From the NCBI GenBank assembly GCA_964187785.1, contig OZ076414.1, positions 50,158,001-50,222,000 on the forward strand: 64,000 nucleotides of DNA, given 5' to 3'. The notes beneath the pieces are model-generated. The model did not search any database. It was not told the origin of the DNA and saw nothing but the letters and a program-made list of their open reading frames with translations. Made by a program: the position numbers and the translations under genes. Each line of letters starts with the position of its first letter. Position 1 is the stretch's first letter. This document shows, one piece after another, positions 54,518-64,000 of this stretch. The DNA comes from Amphiscolops sp. MND2022 (Eukaryota).

Positions 54518-56014
54518 GTCACAATAACCGAGGTTTAACACTTTGAGTTTTATCCCCATTTAGACAGTTCAATGAATTTTCCAAAGAAATTGCAAGATGG
54601 CGGGAGGGGGACAGAAAAACCCAAAAGGTATAAATGCTGTTGAAGCACTTGGTGGGTCTCTAGCTCTCGCTTTCATCGAGACAAGACCTACGTAAAACTG
54701 TTCAGATACTATTAATTCGAGCCCACCAGTTTTCAACCATTCAGCATTCTATATCAATTTTTAAAAACTTTATTATGCTTATAAAATCTAGACTCTGTTT
54801 ATGGCAGCTATAGAGAAAACAAGACGGGAACATTTAAAGTCGGCGCTATATCTAAGGCTCAAAAAGCGCAAAGTTTTTAAAGTACTTCAAAAAAATAAAA
54901 AAGAGATCCTTAGTATGTTTTCGAGGTTCTGAACGTCGGTTTTGTTTTGGACGAGGGTCTGACGATTCCAGTATCTTTTAGACATGCATAGTTCAAGTTG
55001 AACAAATGAACAAAAAGTAGACCTTTCAGTGAGAGGTCTGTTAATGACTCATTAACTCGAACTCACAAACTACTTTTTCCCAAACATTTTGATTTCTTAC
55101 CTTGTGTTGACTTTGTTCACATGGGTTTTGACTTTAATACTGAACAGTTTTAGTCAAGGTCTGTGGTGTGGAGAAAAAACACAAAAAGCGCCGACTAAAA
55201 GGGACTAGATATTGCTACTTTAGTGTTGACTTCAATATTTTCTTCAACATTACACGGGCTAACAACTTGCATTAGTAAGCGTAAATATCTCCTTTCTCGT
55301 TTTATGCTGTCTCGCCACTTGCTGCTCAGCCTAGAGGCTTGGCCAGCAAGAGGGAGCGGGTTCTAATCCTGTGCAAGATTACAAATTATTTCGAATGTTT
55401 GCAAAATTAGACGAGACATATACCCCTTTTTAAGCTTTTTCGGCATTGTGCGACCATTTTTTGAATGATATTTTGGAAATTGTTTTTTTGATAGTTGCGC
55501 AAACGTTTTATTTGTTTTGTTGCGATGAAGCAACATCAATTGAAACAATCTGCTCCTAATTGGTCATAGTAAAAATGTAAAAAGTAAAAAATAACATAGA
55601 AAATTGTTTGCTAATGCCCTGCCCACGGATTTATTGCCCCCCCCCCCAAAAAAAAAGAGTTTTCGTATTTTCAGTGTAAAAATTGATGGGTAGTTATTGT
55701 TTCGGTAATCATTTCGGACCGAACTATTTCACGAGATGACCAGTTTTTCAGAAAAGACGAAATGTTTTTCAGGCTCTGGCCAATAATTTATTTCTGCGTA
55801 GGTGGATATTCTGTGCTAAAATTTTGGGGTACAGATAAATTTTCTGGCAGTAGGCTGAAGGGGCATTAGCAAACAAGATCCACAATATGTATATTTGATA
55901 TTGGATACCACGTGCTTGTGCAGCGGGCATTATTTCACATAAAATCGCGTTAAAAATCCTGATGCGAATTGTTTGAAAAATAAAGCTGGATTTTTTGTTT
56001 AGGGTACTGAGAAT

Positions 56015-57108
56015 ATGAAAGCAAGTGAAGGAAAGCAACCTAACTACCGACATCTGAGTTACAGTCGCCTGAAATTTTTTGTCTTCATTATTGCGTGGTA
56101 CGGTTTTTCGACCATCAATGTAGCTTACTCCAAACAGATTATGCAACCTTTTCTACACCGAGACAAAACGGAGCTTCTGGTCACTATTCTATTCTCGCAG
56201 TATCTTATTGCGGCCTTTCCTAACCTATTTTGGGGCGTCATTTCCCCCAAATCTCTCACATCAAGTCAGTTTTCATTTGAAAGAAATGAAGTCTTAGCTG
56301 GTTTGTTTTATATACTGGGTAACTTGGGAGCTTTGATTTCCTTAGCATTTACATCCATATCTCTGAACCAAATAATTAAAGCTTTGGAGCCTTTGTTTTC
56401 AGCTTTGTTAGCAGCTGTAATTTTCAAGAAATATCTGACAAGCCATCAATTTGTGTCAATGTTAGTTGCTGTTTCTGGAGCTTGTGTTTGCGCATTCAAG
56501 GATTTGCAATTCAATTGGTTCGCCGTTAGCATGGCTTGTTTATCAAATTTTTCAATCGCCGCGAGAAATGTGACGCTCAAACTCTCCAAGGAAAACCGAA
56601 AATCTGCTTTTCAGCAGCAGAGTGAAATTTCCCGGTGCGCAGCACTCATACTTTTACCATTTTGGGTATTCCTTGTTTCAGGATCCCTGGATAGTAGAAG
56701 CATCCTTTTAATACCTGGCGTTTGGCGATTACTTCCGATGATCATAATATCTCACGCCGTGTATAATTTCTGCTCTATATCAGTTTTATCTGTTGTTGAA
56801 AACGTGGTAGAGCATGCATTGCTCAATATAATGAAGAGGCCATTCACTATTTTTACAATCAGTGCTTTCGACTGGAAGAACTTCGAAAACCCGATCAGCC
56901 GAATTCTGGGAATATCCATTCTGATTTTTGGCCAAACGGCGTTCAAACTAAATTGGAAGTTTTCCATGCCTAGCGTCATAGGTAAAAAGAGATCTGTGTT
57001 GTCTAGAATAGTCCTTGTTTCCGCAATGTCGGCTGCTGCACATCTGTATTACTCATCACTACTTCATTACCAAAGTTTCAACATCAGAAATCATTTGTTC
57101 TTTCCTGT
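56015..57108 (+). CDS. Exon 1 of a host gene: TPT/SLC35E-like (triose-phosphate / PEP / nucleotide-sugar transporter) domain plus one extra TM helix
   Basis: WYGFSTINVAYSKQIM, NQIIKALEPLFSALL, CLSNFSIAARNVTLK, HALLNIMKRPF; about 10 hydrophobic segments. Phase-2 donor GT|GTTAGT at 57109. Confidence 0.85.
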
Positions 57109-58135
57109 GTTAGTACAGCTAAAAGCTTCCAAATTAAACTTCGGTCAAGTGAAAACGCTTCAAGCACCCGTTTTTTTAAAGAGTAATAAAATGATCAATA
57201 CTCTGAAAACAATTATTTCACTGTTGTTACACATATGTTACACAAAATCATACAATCAGCTAGTAATTTACATCTTTTTCCACATACTCACGAGACGCAA
57301 AAACACGCTTGAGAATATGTATTTCAAGAAATACGTTTAGGTTCTTTTCTGAGCCCCCACAACCATTTTTCTATAAAAAATGTGAAATGATTAGAATAAA
57401 ATGATTTGAAATCATACCGGAAATTTTAAATTTAAATACAAACTTCTGTTTTTTCTTATGAATCCACGTATTTTTTATTAGGAAATCAACAGCTTCTTTT
57501 TTTGAGTCATAAAAAAGCAGTTATTTTGAACATAATGAGTTCAAGTTTGTGAAACAAGTTTTATTCAAACGAAGACTGTTCTAATTGACGTTAACTTCAT
57601 GCCATGAAAAAAGAGTTCACTATTATTTAGGCCAACTTAAAAATTGTCTGCAACTTTTCCTCAAAAAATTTTGTTGGCAGAGGGACAGAAAAGAGCCAAA
57701 GTTTCTTCCATTGAATTTGTTTTTGACTACCAAGTTCAAGATTTCCAGTTGTAAACGAGGATCAGCCTCAGAATCTGTAGCTGAGAGCATAGGTTTGAAA
57801 AGCAACCCTCTAAAACTCTGAAGTTCGCATCTTACGAACAACAACCCCGAACACTAATTTTTAGTAAAAAAGATACTGTAAGAGACAACAAGAGGTGTAA
57901 GTCTCAAGACGCCCCGCTTAATGCTCAAAAAACGCAAAGTGTACCAAAAATGCACTAAGGGACTTCGTGCAGTGAAAACGATTTTCTTCAACTACAAAAT
58001 AGTAAATTCAGCCCAAAATTGAGGTTATTCAAGGGTGGCAGTTATGATGCATTTAAGAAGGCTAAATGCTTTTTGCACGGAATTGCAGATATTTCGTAAA
58101 AAGTGACTAAATGACTAATTGCATTGAATTTTCAG

Positions 58136-58697
58136 AAACTTGAACAACTTGGGAAACGACGAGACTCGAGCAATTGACTACCCTGGCGACAATCTATCAC
58201 CAGAGTCTATGAAGAAGTACGCGAAAAATTACTTCCAGACAAGATTCAGATTTACCATGAAGAACTTCACTTCTCCAAATTTGGAATCCTGCAGAAGCGA
58301 ACATAAAGATATTTTCTCAGAAATTTACCTCAACGTCACATGCAAAGCTTTACTTCTCCAAAATCTTTCCGAGACAGAGTTTAGTTTACTCAAGTCAATT
58401 TTTGTCTCACAATTTCCACAGTTTTACTCAAAGTCCCAAATCCGATACGTAGTGTTTCATCTTGTGCTCAATCACATAGTTCGTTACAGTTTTCAGCAAG
58501 GAGACATTAAATCCATAGGAAACTATACTCTTTTCAAAGAAGGATTTAATTTGTATTTCTTCAACCCGGGAAATTTACACAACTGGGGAGATGTGCTGGG
58601 ACCCGTTTTGGTCTCCAAGTTGTCAGATATTAATGCTTTGCAAGGTGCTAAAAGCCAGGAAGCTCCAGTTTTATATACAGTTGGCAGTATATTACAG
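58136..58697 (+). CDS. Exon 2: stem region and start of a polysaccharide pyruvyl-transferase-like domain
   Basis: Branch point GACTAAT and acceptor TTTTCAG at 58135 match phase 2. Reads NLHNWGDVLGPVLVSKLS...VLYTVGSILQ, then donor CAG|GTGAGA at 58698. Confidence 0.7.
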
Positions 58698-59253
58698 GTG
58701 AGAGAAGCTGTTTTGTTACAAATACAATGTATCAAAAGAGCGAAGCCAACTTTTTCAAGGTTGTCAAATTTCCCATTCCCTGGAACGTTGATCGTTCTGG
58801 TCATAGGTTGAATCTCTACTAGTTTTCAAAATAAAATCCGAACAAATTCTCTCGGTAATTTTATAGCTTTTGTTACCCAGTTTGTGAACTCTGAGAATAA
58901 CCTTAGAGTTCTCCACTTCAGAATTTTGATACAAATCTTGTATTTTAGTGAAAACATTGGTTAAATCATGGTTAAAAACTTCACCAAGAACGCCAAGAAT
59001 ACCTATGATCTTGCAAAAACGGTAGCCAGCTGCAGCTTGATCAATGAACAGTGGTGTTTTGAACGAAGTGCGAAATTACACTGATTCTCAAATCTCATTG
59101 GCTGATGAGGCAATGCTTCTCAAATCTTTTTGGTTTATACTTCCTGGATTACAACCACAACTTAAGTATTTCAAGTTTTCTGGGTATTACTAGGGTCAAA
59201 TTCAAATCAAAATTACGCTGAAAAAAATTCCATTCCCCTTTTTATCTTTGAAG

Positions 59254-62200
59254 TGTTTCTAGGATAAGCTCGAGAAAAAAGATAAGAATCAATGTTTACT
59301 CTAATCGTAAGGTTACTGTTATGATGTAAAATTTTAGAGTATAGGCTAAGTAGTTGCTGGTAAACGAACTAAAAATAGCAACGGAGATATAATGTTGTTT
59401 ATCAACAGTCTATTGAGTTTCTACTGTTCTACATTCCCCTTTCTGTGATTGGAGGAGAATCATCCAATGGATATCCGTTGCTGTCCTTTTTGTCGTTATG
59501 TTCGGTCGTCCTTCCATGGTCTGGTGATGTTTTCTCCGGTGTTCCGTGAGAAGCGTGTTGTATTTCCGGTTGTGGGTAAGTTGTACATCTTGGGCGATTT
59601 ACTGGTAGTCCTTTTTGTCCTGTTCCGGCATTTCGTCCGTGCACTCCGGAATTGGTGACAGGTTGAGTCGTTTTGTTGTGTTTCCTGTTATCAGATTGGT
59701 TAACTGGGTTGTCTAATCTAACGATTGGGTTTGTTTTCGTTAACCTCTTTGACCGGCGCAGGTTAGCATTTTCTAGTTGTTCTATGTCTTTCTCTATTTC
59801 AGCGCTAGAACTTAGGTTGCTTGTGAATTCTATTTCTGATAAGTCCAGTTCGATTTCTGTTTTGTTATTATTAAACGTTACCTTAACGTAATTGTCTCTG
59901 ATTTGGATCTCTTGCCCCGACCGTAGGGAGTCTCTTATTGTTTGGTCTATGTCGGAATCCGACTTTTGGTCCGTGTTTATGGTTAATGGTCCCCTCTCTG
60001 AGCTGTTTTGGTGGCCCGGTGATTGTCTGAAGATGCTGAGGCTGTGCTGTCTCTTGTCAGCCGTGGCTTTCATCTGCCAATTGTTCCTGCCCGTTTAGTG
60101 GTGGGCGGGTCTGGGCTGATATCCAGATCTTCTTCCGATTGGGATTTTTCGGGAGTAGTGGTGGCTTTGTTTGGCTTCCTGGCTTATCTCCCGTTTTGTC
60201 CTCTTTGGCAAGTCCCTCTGTTTGTTGGTTCCTGTTCAAACGTATTATTTGGTTTGCTAATGAGTTTGCGGTGAATTCTTTTATTGTCTGAAGTGGTCAC
60301 TGTATGTTTTGTTCCAGTGACTGCCGTTTGTAAGTGTTCAGAGTATGAACTTTCAAATTTTCCCCTCTGTTTTTTTCGTTCGAATAATTGAAACGGATTT
60401 TTACTCACCGTTTTTGCTCCTTTTCTCTTTTGTCTCATTGGTAGATGGTCGGAGCTACCGCCTTCTCCACTGAATGTGTATACCTGTAAGGTATCTGGTC
60501 TCGCTGAAATGAAATCATTGGTTATCGTTTTGGTTTTGTCTAATTTTTGCATGTTACTCCATTCCGTGTTCGGTTCTATGCTGAAGTGTAATTCAAATGC
60601 GGATTTTCTTAATCTAGTGTGTGGTGTTGTCCGCACTACGTTTAGAGCTAAGTCCAATGCTTTTCCGAATGGTTCTCCAGCTTCAATATTAGTTAACAGT
60701 ATTTTTTTTAGAGTTCGTACTCCTCGTTTTTCCAATAACGCATAGGAACTTTGATGCGAGCAGTTCGGCTGCCGTTCTTTCTACGAATTCGCAATTCTTT
60801 TCAATTTCTAGAATGCGTTTCCAGTTTTCTGCAGCTGATTCTTCCGGTTCTCGTTTCAAATTGAAGAAATCTGCTCTGCTATGGTGATTGTTCCGCTCGG
60901 GAATAAAGTGTAGTCTGAAAAGTGTGTAAAGTCGGTATTAGGGTAGAGAATTCGGTTCTCTTTCTCTTACCGCGTTTGTCATTTCCGTGATCGCTGACTG
61001 TCCAATCGCCCATATGAATACACCTTTGATTTCCTCTTCCAACTGTTCTGAATTAGGGTAGTATTTCTTTGGAGTTGGTCATTTTCGATAAATCTTGATA
61101 CAATAATATTGGTCATCTTGATATATTGGACGAATTTTCTCCACCATAGTTTTGCACTGGTGTGGTCGTTTTTCTCAAGGATAGGAATGGGTAACTTCTA
61201 TGTAGATGTCCTTTCTACCGATCCCGTCGTTGTATTGTTTGGGATTGACTGGCTACTGTTCTGTCCGGTTATGTTGCGTCTTCGCCTTCCATTGTTTTGT
61301 TTAAATTGCTGATTGCGCCATGTATTTCTAGGATAAGCTCGAGATAAGAGATAAGAATCAATGTTTACTCTAATCGTAGGTTTACTGATATGATTTAATC
61401 TTTTAGAGTATAGGCTAAGTAGTTGTTAGTAAACAAACTAAAAATAGCAAAGGAGATATAATGTTGTTTATCAACAGTCTATTGAGTTTCTACTGTTCTA
61501 CATTCCCCTTTCTGTGATTGGAGGAGAATCATCCAATGGATATCCGTTGCTGTCCTTTTTGTCGTTATGTTCGGTCGTCCTTCCATGGTCTGGTGATGTT
61601 TTCTCCGGTGTTCCGTGAGAAGGGTGTTGTATTTCCGGTTGTGGGTAAGTTGTACATCTTGGTCGATTTACTGGTAGTCCTTTTTGTCCTGTTCCGGCAT
61701 TTCGTCCGTGCACTCCGGAAGTGGTGACAGGTTGAGTCGTTTTGTTGTGTTTCCTGTTATCAGATTGGTTAACTGGGTTGTCTAATCTAACGATTGGGTT
61801 TGTTTTCGTTAACCTCTTTGACCGGCGCAGGTTAGCATTTTCTAGTTGTTCTATGTCTTTCTCTATTTCAGCGCTAGAACTTAGGTTGCTTGTGAATTCT
61901 AGTTCTGATAAGTCCAGTTCGATTTCTGTTTTGTTATTATTAAACGTTACCTTAACGTAATTGTCTCTGATTTGGATCTCTTGCCCCGACTGTAGGGAGT
62001 CTCTTATTGTTTGGTCTATGTCGGAATCCGACTTTTGGTCCGTGTTTATGGTTAATGGTCCCCTCTCTGAGCTGTTTTGGTGGCCCGGTGATTGTCTGAA
62101 GATGCTGAGGCTGTGCGGTCTCTTGTCAGCCGTGGCTTTCATCTGCCAATTGTTCCTGCCCGTTTAGTGGTGGGCGGGTCTGGGCTGATATCCAGATCTT

Positions 62201-64000
62201 CTTCCGATTGGGATTTTTCGGGAGTAGTGGTGGCTTTGTTTGGCTTCCTGGCTTATCTCCCGTTTTGTCCTCTTTGGCAAGTCCCTCTGTTTGTTGGTTC
62301 CTGTTCAAACGTATTATTTGGTTTGCTAATGAGTTTGCGGTGAATTCTTTTATTATCTGAAGTGGTCACTGTATGTTTTGTTCCAGTGACTGCCGTTTGT
62401 AAGTGTTCAGAGTATGAACTTTCAAATTTTCCCCTCTGTTTTTTTCGTTCGAATAATTGAAACGGATTTTTACTCACCGTTTTTGCTCCTTTTCTCTTTT
62501 GTCTCATTGGTAGATGGTCGGAGCTACCGCCTTCTCCACTGAATGTGTATACCTGTAAGGTATCTGGTCTCGCTGAAATGAAATCATTGGTTATCGTTTT
62601 GGTTTTGTCTAATTTTTGCATGTTACTCCATTCCGTGTTCGGTTCTATGCTGAAGTGTAATTCAAATGCGGATTTTCTTAATCTAGTGTGTGGTGTTGTC
62701 CGCACTACGTTTAGAGCTAAGTCCAATGCTTTTCCGAATGGTTCTCCAGCTTCAATATTAGTTAACAGTATTTTTTTTAGAGTTCGTACTCCTCGTTTTT
62801 CCAATAACGCATAGGAACTTTGATGCGAGCAGTTCGGCTGCCGTTCTTTCTACGAATTCGCAATTCTTTTCAATTTCTAGAATGCGTTTCCAGTTTTCTG
62901 CAGCTGATTCTTCCGGTTCTCGTTTCAAATTGAAGAAATCTGCTCTGCTATGGTGATTGTTCCGCTCGGGAATAAAGTGTAGTCTGAAAAGTGTGTAAAG
63001 TCGGTATTAAGGTAGAGAATTCGGTTCTCTTTCTCTTACCGCGTTTGTCATTTCCGTGATCGCTGACTGTCCAATCGCCCATATGAATACACCTTTGATT
63101 TCCTCTTCCAACTGTTCTGAATTAGGGTAGTATTTCTTTGGAGTTGGTCATTTTCGATAAATCTTGATACAATAATATTGGTCATCTTGATATATTGGAC
63201 GAATTTTCTCCACCATAGTTTTGCACTGGTGTGGTCGTTTTTCTCAAGGATAGGAATGGGTAACTTCTATGTAGATGTCCTTTCTACCGATCCCGTCGTT
63301 GTATTGTTTGGGATTGACTGGCTACTGTTCTGTCCGGTTATGTTGCGTCTTCGCCTTCCATTGTTTTGTTTAAATTGCTGATTGCGCCATGTATTTCTAG
63401 GATAAGCTCGAGATAAGAGATAAGAATCAATGTTTACTCTAATCGTAGGTTTACTGATATGATTTAATCTTTTAGAGTATAGGCTAAGTAGTTGTTAGTA
63501 AACAAACTAAAAATAGCAAAGGAGATATAATGTTGTTTATCAACAGTCTATTGAGTTTCTACTGTTCTACATTCCCCTTTCTGTGATTGGAGGAGAATCA
63601 TCCAATGGATATCCGTTGCTGTCCTTTTTGTCGTTATGTTCGGTCGTCCTTCCATGGTCTGGTGATGTTTTCTCCGGTGTTCCGTGAGAAGGGTGTTGTA
63701 TTTCCGGTTGTTGGTAAGTTGTACATCTTGGTCGATTTACTGGTAGTCCTTTTTGTCCTGTTCCGGCATTTCGTCCGTGCACTCCGGAAGTGGTGACAGG
63801 TTGAGTCGTTTTGTTGTGTTTCCTGTTATCAGATTGGTTAACTGGGTTGTCTAATCTAACGATTGGGTTTGTTTTCGTTAACCTCTTTGACCGGCGCAGG
63901 TTAGCATTTTCTAGTTGTTCTATGTCTTTCTCTATTTCAGCGCTAGAACTTAGGTTGCTTGTGAATTCTAGTTCTGATAAGTCCAGTTCGATTTCTGTTT
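59254..64000 (-). repeat. Tandem array (2069-bp period, at least 2.3 units) of an internally deleted Gypsy: LTR, gag 5' part, integrase 3' part, PPT, LTR
   Basis: ORFs recur at +2069 (59429 / 61498 / 63567). LTRs 59254-59433, 61321-61502, 63390-63571 with PPT AGAAAGGGGAA and PBS-like TGGCGCAATC. Gag (AAELLASKFL) is joined to integrase (RGVRTLKK) near 60735. Confidence 0.93.

Follow-up and report, generated by a model that had tools for sequence, protein, structure and literature searches.

A probable carrier–pyruvyl transferase gene fusion in Amphiscolops sp. with a predicted role in glycan pyruvylation

In Schizosaccharomyces pombe, pyruvate ketals are placed on galactose by Pvg1p, a luminal PF04230-type enzyme with the GT-B fold (PMC6801904, PMC4872226), and the phosphoenolpyruvate (PEP) used by this Golgi enzyme is supplied by the carriers Pet1p and Pet2p (PMC6801904, PMC10435577). 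PEP is the donor of both Pvg1p and CsaB, and pyruvyl transferases release phosphate (PMC6801904, PMC10435577). Pyruvate is also present on glycoconjugates of sponges (aggregation factor) and Aplysia (glycolipid) (PMC6994554). An animal enzyme that makes pyruvate ketals is not named in two reviews of the field (PMC6801904, PMC6994554), and none was found in our literature search. Here, we describe a gene that begins in a 64,000-nucleotide stretch of the Amphiscolops sp. MND2022 genome (assembly GCA_964187785.1, contig OZ076414.1, positions 50,158,001 to 50,222,000 of the forward strand; hereafter, the window) and encodes, in five exons and 790 amino acids (aa), a TPT-family carrier with the phosphate site of a phosphate translocator, an additional membrane helix (helix 11), and a pyruvyl transferase domain of the PF04230 (PS_pyruv_trans) family. 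We consider it probable that the product is one membrane protein, in which the carrier imports PEP and the attached luminal enzyme pyruvylates a glycan.

As in S. pombe, both a Golgi PEP carrier and a luminal enzyme are expected here (the roles, rather than the sequences of Pet1p and Pet2p, being compared), but the yeast activities reside in separate proteins, of which Pvg1p has its own N-terminal membrane anchor, whereas carrier, helix 11, and enzyme would lie in a single chain in Amphiscolops. The carrier half shares with the plastid phosphate translocators (GsTPT2, PDB 5y78/5y79; plant TPT and PPT) the ten-helix fold family and four phosphate ligands; it differs from them in having no transit peptide, in the replacement of His185 by Asn, in the presence of Ile or Phe at the position of Phe263, and in the attachment of an extra helix and an enzyme. 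The enzyme half matches the prokaryotic and viral PF04230 enzymes (~260-310 aa) over the whole domain, including the motifs NxGD, GSIL, WGSG, VRGP, DP.LL, IPHYVD, SSSLHG, and FK..DY, whereas the carrier and a helical domain of ~115 aa are additions seen in the acoel proteins, which are encoded by genes with spliceosomal introns. No paper was found in a literature search for a carrier–pyruvyl transferase fusion, which would unite the carrier-plus-enzyme pathway of fission yeast in one animal protein.

Gene structure and recurrence of the architecture

Exon 1 of the gene (coordinates of all features are given in Table 1) is 1094 nt long, and intron 1 is therefore a phase-2 intron; a branch-like site (ctaat) lies ~20 nt 5' of its acceptor. 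A stop codon is present three codons upstream of this acceptor in the same frame, so that the exon 2 frame opens at the acceptor, and exons 1 and 2 when joined give 552 codons with no stop. When the whole genome was scanned with PF04230, the same strand gave a match 14.5 kb farther downstream, and exons 3-5 were located 6.7-10.8 kb beyond the end of the window; the interval annotated initially (56015-58697) covers two of the five exons. All four introns are of the GT-AG type, and the spliced frame is open throughout. The first-pass annotation of the window had described a phase-2 intron with a branch point at 57109-58135, joining a carrier exon to an exon with an NWGD motif, and had suggested a search for further exons beyond 64 kb. 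Its coordinates and description of the intron are correct, and the three downstream exons now extend the gene to the window-equivalent position 74787.

The same architecture is present at five loci of the genome, including the focal one (one on C6, three on C8, and one on C1), with carrier, helix 11, and transferase colinear on one strand in each. At all five, the carrier frame remains open past helix 11 up to a phase-2 GT(T/G)AGT donor. The exon for the linker domain that precedes the enzyme was found in three of the four paralogs, and there a strong acceptor restores the frame just ahead of the linker domain; the linker exon of the fourth paralog (C8c) was not found in the fetched DNA, which contains a 200-N gap. 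In paralog C8a, conserved coding sequence follows directly after the acceptor, and this exon cannot start a protein of its own because no Met occurs until past the conserved NY..R.R motif.

Both halves are also joined in two RefSeq models of Convolutriloba macropyga (XP_075251655.1 and XP_075251646.1, 798 and 816 aa, respectively), which derive from LOC142344055 and are named 'uncharacterized protein'. These models align with the focal protein end to end (focal residues 25-786, 38% identity), and the C. macropyga protein exceeds the cut-offs for both Pfam domains. Its single coding intron is a phase-2 intron located after helix 11, as in the focal gene, from which it differs in having two coding exons rather than five and in belonging to a different lineage of the enzyme tree. 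The ESM Atlas cluster nearest to the C. macropyga protein has 60 eukaryotic members, mostly molluscan, of which 97% carry PF04230 and 93% carry TPT; a molluscan fusion family is read here from the cluster's own Pfam content alone. A second cluster with TPT and PF04230 was not found by word-based search. Among the 150 best representative matches, ten proteins (474-1492 aa) have a C-terminal PF04230 domain and no TPT; their N-terminal parts are GT2, GT8, or unassigned, and one of these proteins is from Pseudovibrio. In a third assembly (ERZ26859043), carrier and transferase open reading frames (ORFs) lie on different short contigs. The transporter–pyruvyltransferase order proposed for the window is kept at the five loci and in C. 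macropyga, as is the phase of the intron, and the further supposition that similar fusions already exist unannotated in other marine invertebrates is borne out by the acoel RefSeq protein and the mostly molluscan cluster. The architecture is, in other words, already in RefSeq under an uninformative name.

The carrier frame stays open to a consensus phase-2 donor in each of five diverged copies as well as in another species, an acceptor restores the frame wherever the linker exon was found, and the C8a paralog has no Met before the conserved linker start. These observations make it quite improbable that the carrier and the pyruvyl transferase are two tandem genes with functionally linked but separate protein products, perhaps forming an operon-like pair whose transcripts are separated at the exon 2 acceptor by spliced-leader trans-splicing. 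Such a pair would be compatible with an exon 1/exon 2 junction that is known from genomic DNA only, and with a Met located 24 codons into focal exon 2, before the conserved motif. ORF-type gene calls on draft assemblies do give the halves as separate proteins, but the C. macropyga RefSeq models join them, and the mostly molluscan cluster has both domains in one protein; moreover, a free transferase would have neither signal nor anchor, and the conserved helix 11 would be purposeless. A single chain is therefore the reading retained below.

We regard as very improbable the view that the focal copy is a decaying, no longer expressed paralog with an intron 2 swollen to 12 kb by a tandem repeat: an array with a 2069-bp period does occupy much of this intron, and the last junction encodes Pro-Ala in the focal copy and Pro-Gly in the paralogs, but the 790 codons are open over five exons, the splice sites are all canonical, the family motifs are intact, and the allelic differences seen in the coding exon are synonymous or conservative, with no change of frame.

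Several other features of these loci were recorded. The tandem array extends over 59253-64000 of the window and on to approximately L007:4330, with at least four copies that share ~96% identity, and the minus strand of each copy has ORFs of 214 and 183 aa, neither of which matches Pfam. Located 12 nt 5' of the start ATG, a strong acceptor-like site (tttttgtttag followed by G, 55992-56002) could be the acceptor of an intron in the 5'-untranslated region or a spliced-leader acceptor. In the DNA contigs, a second haplotype was observed that differs at six sites of the helix 11 region (56967-57097), two of them synonymous and the others V328A, M338V, S339A, and H351Q; one or two runs show three further differences in other parts of exon 1 (two synonymous and I212M). 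The focal carrier is encoded by a single exon, whereas that of the four paralogs (L013/L009, L015, L016, and L018) is interrupted by an intron following the SLNQ motif (~residue 119). The copies are likewise not uniform in their downstream introns, residues 380-708 of C8a lying within one exon. Paralog C8c (C8:28995000-29023999) has an extra fragment that resembles the last exon and contains stops, and this paralog is possibly incomplete or in decay. Stops also occur in another fragment, at C1:89490652-89490876.

The carrier half and its phosphate site

Residues 22-307, encoded by exon 1, match Pfam PF03151 (TPT) with 102.1 bits (cut-off 30). Ten carrier helices and one extra helix were recognized by hydropathy and also in the secondary structure of a low-confidence model of exon 1 (nine sequences, pLDDT 55), which was used for helix counting alone and for no structure search. 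Helix 11 is present in all paralogs and in the C. macropyga homolog. The TPT-family multi-pass domain followed by an extra transmembrane helix, as first described for the window, is thus recovered by both Pfam and hydropathy.

The C. macropyga homolog has one sequence match among solved structures, namely the red-algal triose-phosphate/phosphate translocator 5y78 (E 2e-14). In GsTPT2, the phosphate ligands are Lys204, Tyr339, Lys362, and Arg363 (bioRxiv 10.1101/169169). The corresponding focal positions were read via the HMMER alignment of the C. macropyga homolog to 5y78 and the family alignment A3, and all four ligands are retained in the focal carrier. Two other single-exon TPT-family ORFs of the genome have K-E and K-N at the position of the Lys-Arg pair; these are probably ordinary nucleotide-sugar-type carriers. 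The Lys-Arg pair reportedly tells phosphate translocators from nucleotide-sugar transporters, a distinction ascribed to work by Knappe and co-workers in 2003. A phosphorylated substrate for the focal carrier is well supported by this pattern of residues. By language-model features, the carrier falls among general eukaryotic TPT/EamA and nucleotide-sugar-transporter clusters, and a word-based search for carrier relatives yielded nothing beyond acoel-type ORFs.

The transferase half, its linker, and its origin

The representative search returned 1869 relatives of the enzyme half, of which 120 were aligned, and a PF04230 match was obtained for 120 of the 120. Their consensus starts with NFGDxLxPYL...GSIL, and the focal NWGD and the VGSILQ that forms the C-terminal end of exon 2 are its opening motifs, in agreement with the first-pass annotation, which had noted a resemblance of NWGD...GSILQ to the N-terminus of pyruvyl transferases. 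A profile of 278 positions was built from the 111 non-acoel, prokaryote-type members. Spliced focal residues 500-787 match this profile with 188 bits over positions 8-266 (E 5e-54, calculated for one million sequences), with exon 2 residues 500-552 aligning from position 8 onward and with the alignment unbroken across the three downstream exon joins (exons 2-5). The family is therefore confirmed, and the gene model is checked by the same match. With a score of 30.2 bits, a paralog exon exceeds the PF04230 cut-off of 25.3, as does the C. macropyga protein with 31.5 bits, so that the Pfam search proposed initially detects TPT in focal exon 1 and PS_pyruv_trans in these two relatives.

Structures were modelled separately for the exon 1 carrier and for the enzyme half of the C. 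macropyga homolog; a mixed alignment (A2) misplaced carrier-only sequences. The model of homolog residues 365-798 (pLDDT 90.4) has a two-lobed GT-B-like fold as in Pvg1p, the comparison being made on the homolog rather than on the focal protein. Among solved structures, the model agrees best with 6x1l (Z 12.9), followed by yeast Pvg1p (Z 12.3, 234 residues); these Z scores were obtained with a second aligner, whereas the GT-B matches given by plain Foldseek were weak and mixed and Pvg1p ranked 28th among them. The nearest structural clusters in the Atlas are all PF04230, one of them at a TM of 0.84 and 2.4 A, and 100 of the 100 nearest clusters by language-model features of the enzyme half are likewise PF04230.

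The focal protein contains Asn514, Asp517, Arg590, and His696, i.e. the family-invariant N, D, R, and H, together with the near-invariant Lys723. Residues that have been shown to matter are D106, R217, and R337 in Pvg1p and R148, H308, and K328 in CsaB. Because the link to Pvg1p is not one of sequence, we infer rather than read the correspondence of Asn514/Asp517, Arg590, His696, and Lys723 to these mutated residues. Between helix 11 and the enzyme lies a helical linker domain of ~115 aa, which is conserved in the paralogs, forms six helices at high confidence in the homolog model, and is missing from the short prokaryotic relatives.

Among relatives of the enzyme domain, the named ones come from prokaryotes (marine Flavobacteriia and Methanosarcina, 28-36% identity), and its Atlas neighbours include phage and giant-virus clusters. 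In a quick tree, ten acoel-type sequences were united in one clade (support 100) that sits on a long branch and lacks a supported sister; the clade comprises three lineages, and the focal copy is alone in one of them. This topology fits a single entry followed by duplication, and an origin of the enzyme domain by gene transfer is plausible from these relationships. The phylogeny suggested earlier for a horizontal origin thus yields the single long-branched acoel clade, but no donor that can be named.

In the third, acoel-type assembly (L031:3369-4307), a DNA_pol_B_2 ORF is located ~6 kb upstream of the carrier ORF; ORFs of this type are carried by Maverick/Polinton-like or viral elements.

Table 1. 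Positions of the features discussed in the text (window coordinates unless a contig is given)
Feature	Position	Strand	Remarks
Coding exon 1	56015..57108	+	ATG at 56015; residues 1-364 and two bases of codon 365; TPT-family carrier and helix 11
Lys122	56378..56380	+	Equivalent of phosphate-binding Lys204 of GsTPT2
Tyr250	56762..56764	+	Equivalent of phosphate-binding Tyr339 of GsTPT2; invariant in family alignment A3
Lys274-Arg275 (NIMKRPF)	56834..56839	+	Equivalent of Lys362-Arg363 of GsTPT2; invariant in A3
Extra membrane helix 11	56993..57064	+	Residues 327-350 by hydropathy, GKKR just before; 328-356 in model
Intron 1	57109..58135	+	Phase 2, gttagt...tttcag
Coding exon 2	58136..58697	+	Helical linker (residues ~380-500) and first part of pyruvyl transferase domain
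NWGD motif (Asn514-Asp517)	58581..58592	+	N, G, and D invariant in 120 PF04230 proteins
Intron 2 (start)	58698..64000	+	~12 kb; donor gtgaga at 58698; extends beyond window end
Exon 3	window-equivalent 70755-70919 (L007:6755-6919)	+	tblastn with paralog
Exon 4	window-equivalent 73253-73553 (L007:9253-9553)	+	tblastn with paralog
Exon 5	window-equivalent 74537-74787 (L008:537-787)	+	tblastn with paralog
TPT-family ORFs with K-E and K-N	C1:90172581-90173465 and C6:44542729-44543574		395 and 346 aa

Proposed mechanism and its implications

In carriers of the TPT family, the helices are even in number and both termini face the cytosol (PMC6709370), and an eleventh helix would consequently place the enzyme on the luminal or outer side of the membrane. 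The arrangement of 10 + 1 helices and the positive GKKR patch before helix 11 point to this topology. In the proposed mechanism, the carrier would take PEP from the cytosol into a secretory compartment, presumably the Golgi, in exchange for phosphate, and helix 11 would bring the chain over the membrane, so that the linker and the GT-B-like PS_pyruv_trans domain lie on the non-cytosolic side. The attached enzyme would then use the imported PEP to place a pyruvate ketal on an acceptor glycan, and the phosphate that it releases would leave again via the carrier. A strict one-for-one exchange of PEP and phosphate that is tied to the enzyme in this manner would balance donor supply and phosphate removal.

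Several observations weigh against this mechanism or parts of it. The four runs that cover the stretch come from one sample and are DNA contigs without joints, none being recorded as RNA, and the junctions were read from the genomic sequence. Focal exon 4 by itself scores 22.4 bits for PF04230, which is under the cut-off of 25.3, and a search of PDB chains with the homolog enzyme half and with the 120-sequence profile gave no match, including Pvg1p, even at E 10. GT-B epimerases reach Z values of ~11, about 1-2 units under the best matches of the homolog model. On the carrier side, TIGR00817 (tpt), which models phosphate/PEP translocators, is the best NCBIfam match of exon 1, yet with 55.1 bits against a trusted cut-off of 317.9. 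His185 of GsTPT2 binds the carboxylate of the C3 substrate, and in plant PPT, Asn replaces Phe263 and widens the pocket for PEP (bioRxiv 10.1101/169169). The His185 position is occupied by Asn103 in the focal protein and by Asn in C. macropyga, and at the position of Phe263, the focal protein has Ile181, whereas the paralogs and C. macropyga have Phe; with neither His185 nor the PPT-type Asn retained, the known markers give no indication of PEP specificity.

The last point, the general TPT/EamA and nucleotide-sugar-transporter clusters in which the carrier's language-model neighbours fall, and a GT-B fold that is common to many glycosyltransferases and epimerases at similar Z would all suit a true fusion with another chemistry, in which the cargo of the carrier is phosphate alone, a nucleotide sugar, or some phosphorylated compound other than PEP, in which the group transferred by the enzyme is not pyruvate, or in which both apply. 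We judge this to be unlikely, since the carrier retains all four phosphate ligands including the Lys-Arg pair, in contrast to the K-E and K-N of the two other TPT-family genes, and since its sole sequence match among solved structures is a phosphate translocator rather than a nucleotide-sugar transporter. Likewise, the aligned enzyme relatives are PF04230 without exception, and the family-invariant N, D, R, and H of alignment A1 align with the focal sequence. PEP import coupled to luminal pyruvyl transfer is thus the function that we favour for the focal protein.

At a broader level, we tentatively propose, at somewhat less than even confidence, that the secreted or surface glycans of acoels, and probably also those of molluscs, are pyruvylated by means of a PEP/phosphate antiporter that is covalently tied to a luminal pyruvyl transferase of prokaryotic/viral type, import, transfer, and export being balanced one to one. 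The architecture may be viewed as a 'Rosetta stone' that connects pyruvylation with a TPT-family carrier; in fission yeast, genetics makes this connection for separate proteins. Three questions thereby become directly testable, namely whether PEP is transported by a TPT carrier of the Golgi type whose phosphate site is plastid-like, whether acoels have pyruvylated glycans, and by which route a mostly prokaryotic/viral enzyme family entered animal genomes. The gene family is a concrete candidate for the enzyme behind the pyruvate ketals of marine invertebrate glycans; if the proposal is true, this long-missing enzyme would be named, and it would be part of an animal transporter–enzyme fusion for which a gene of probably foreign origin supplied the basis.

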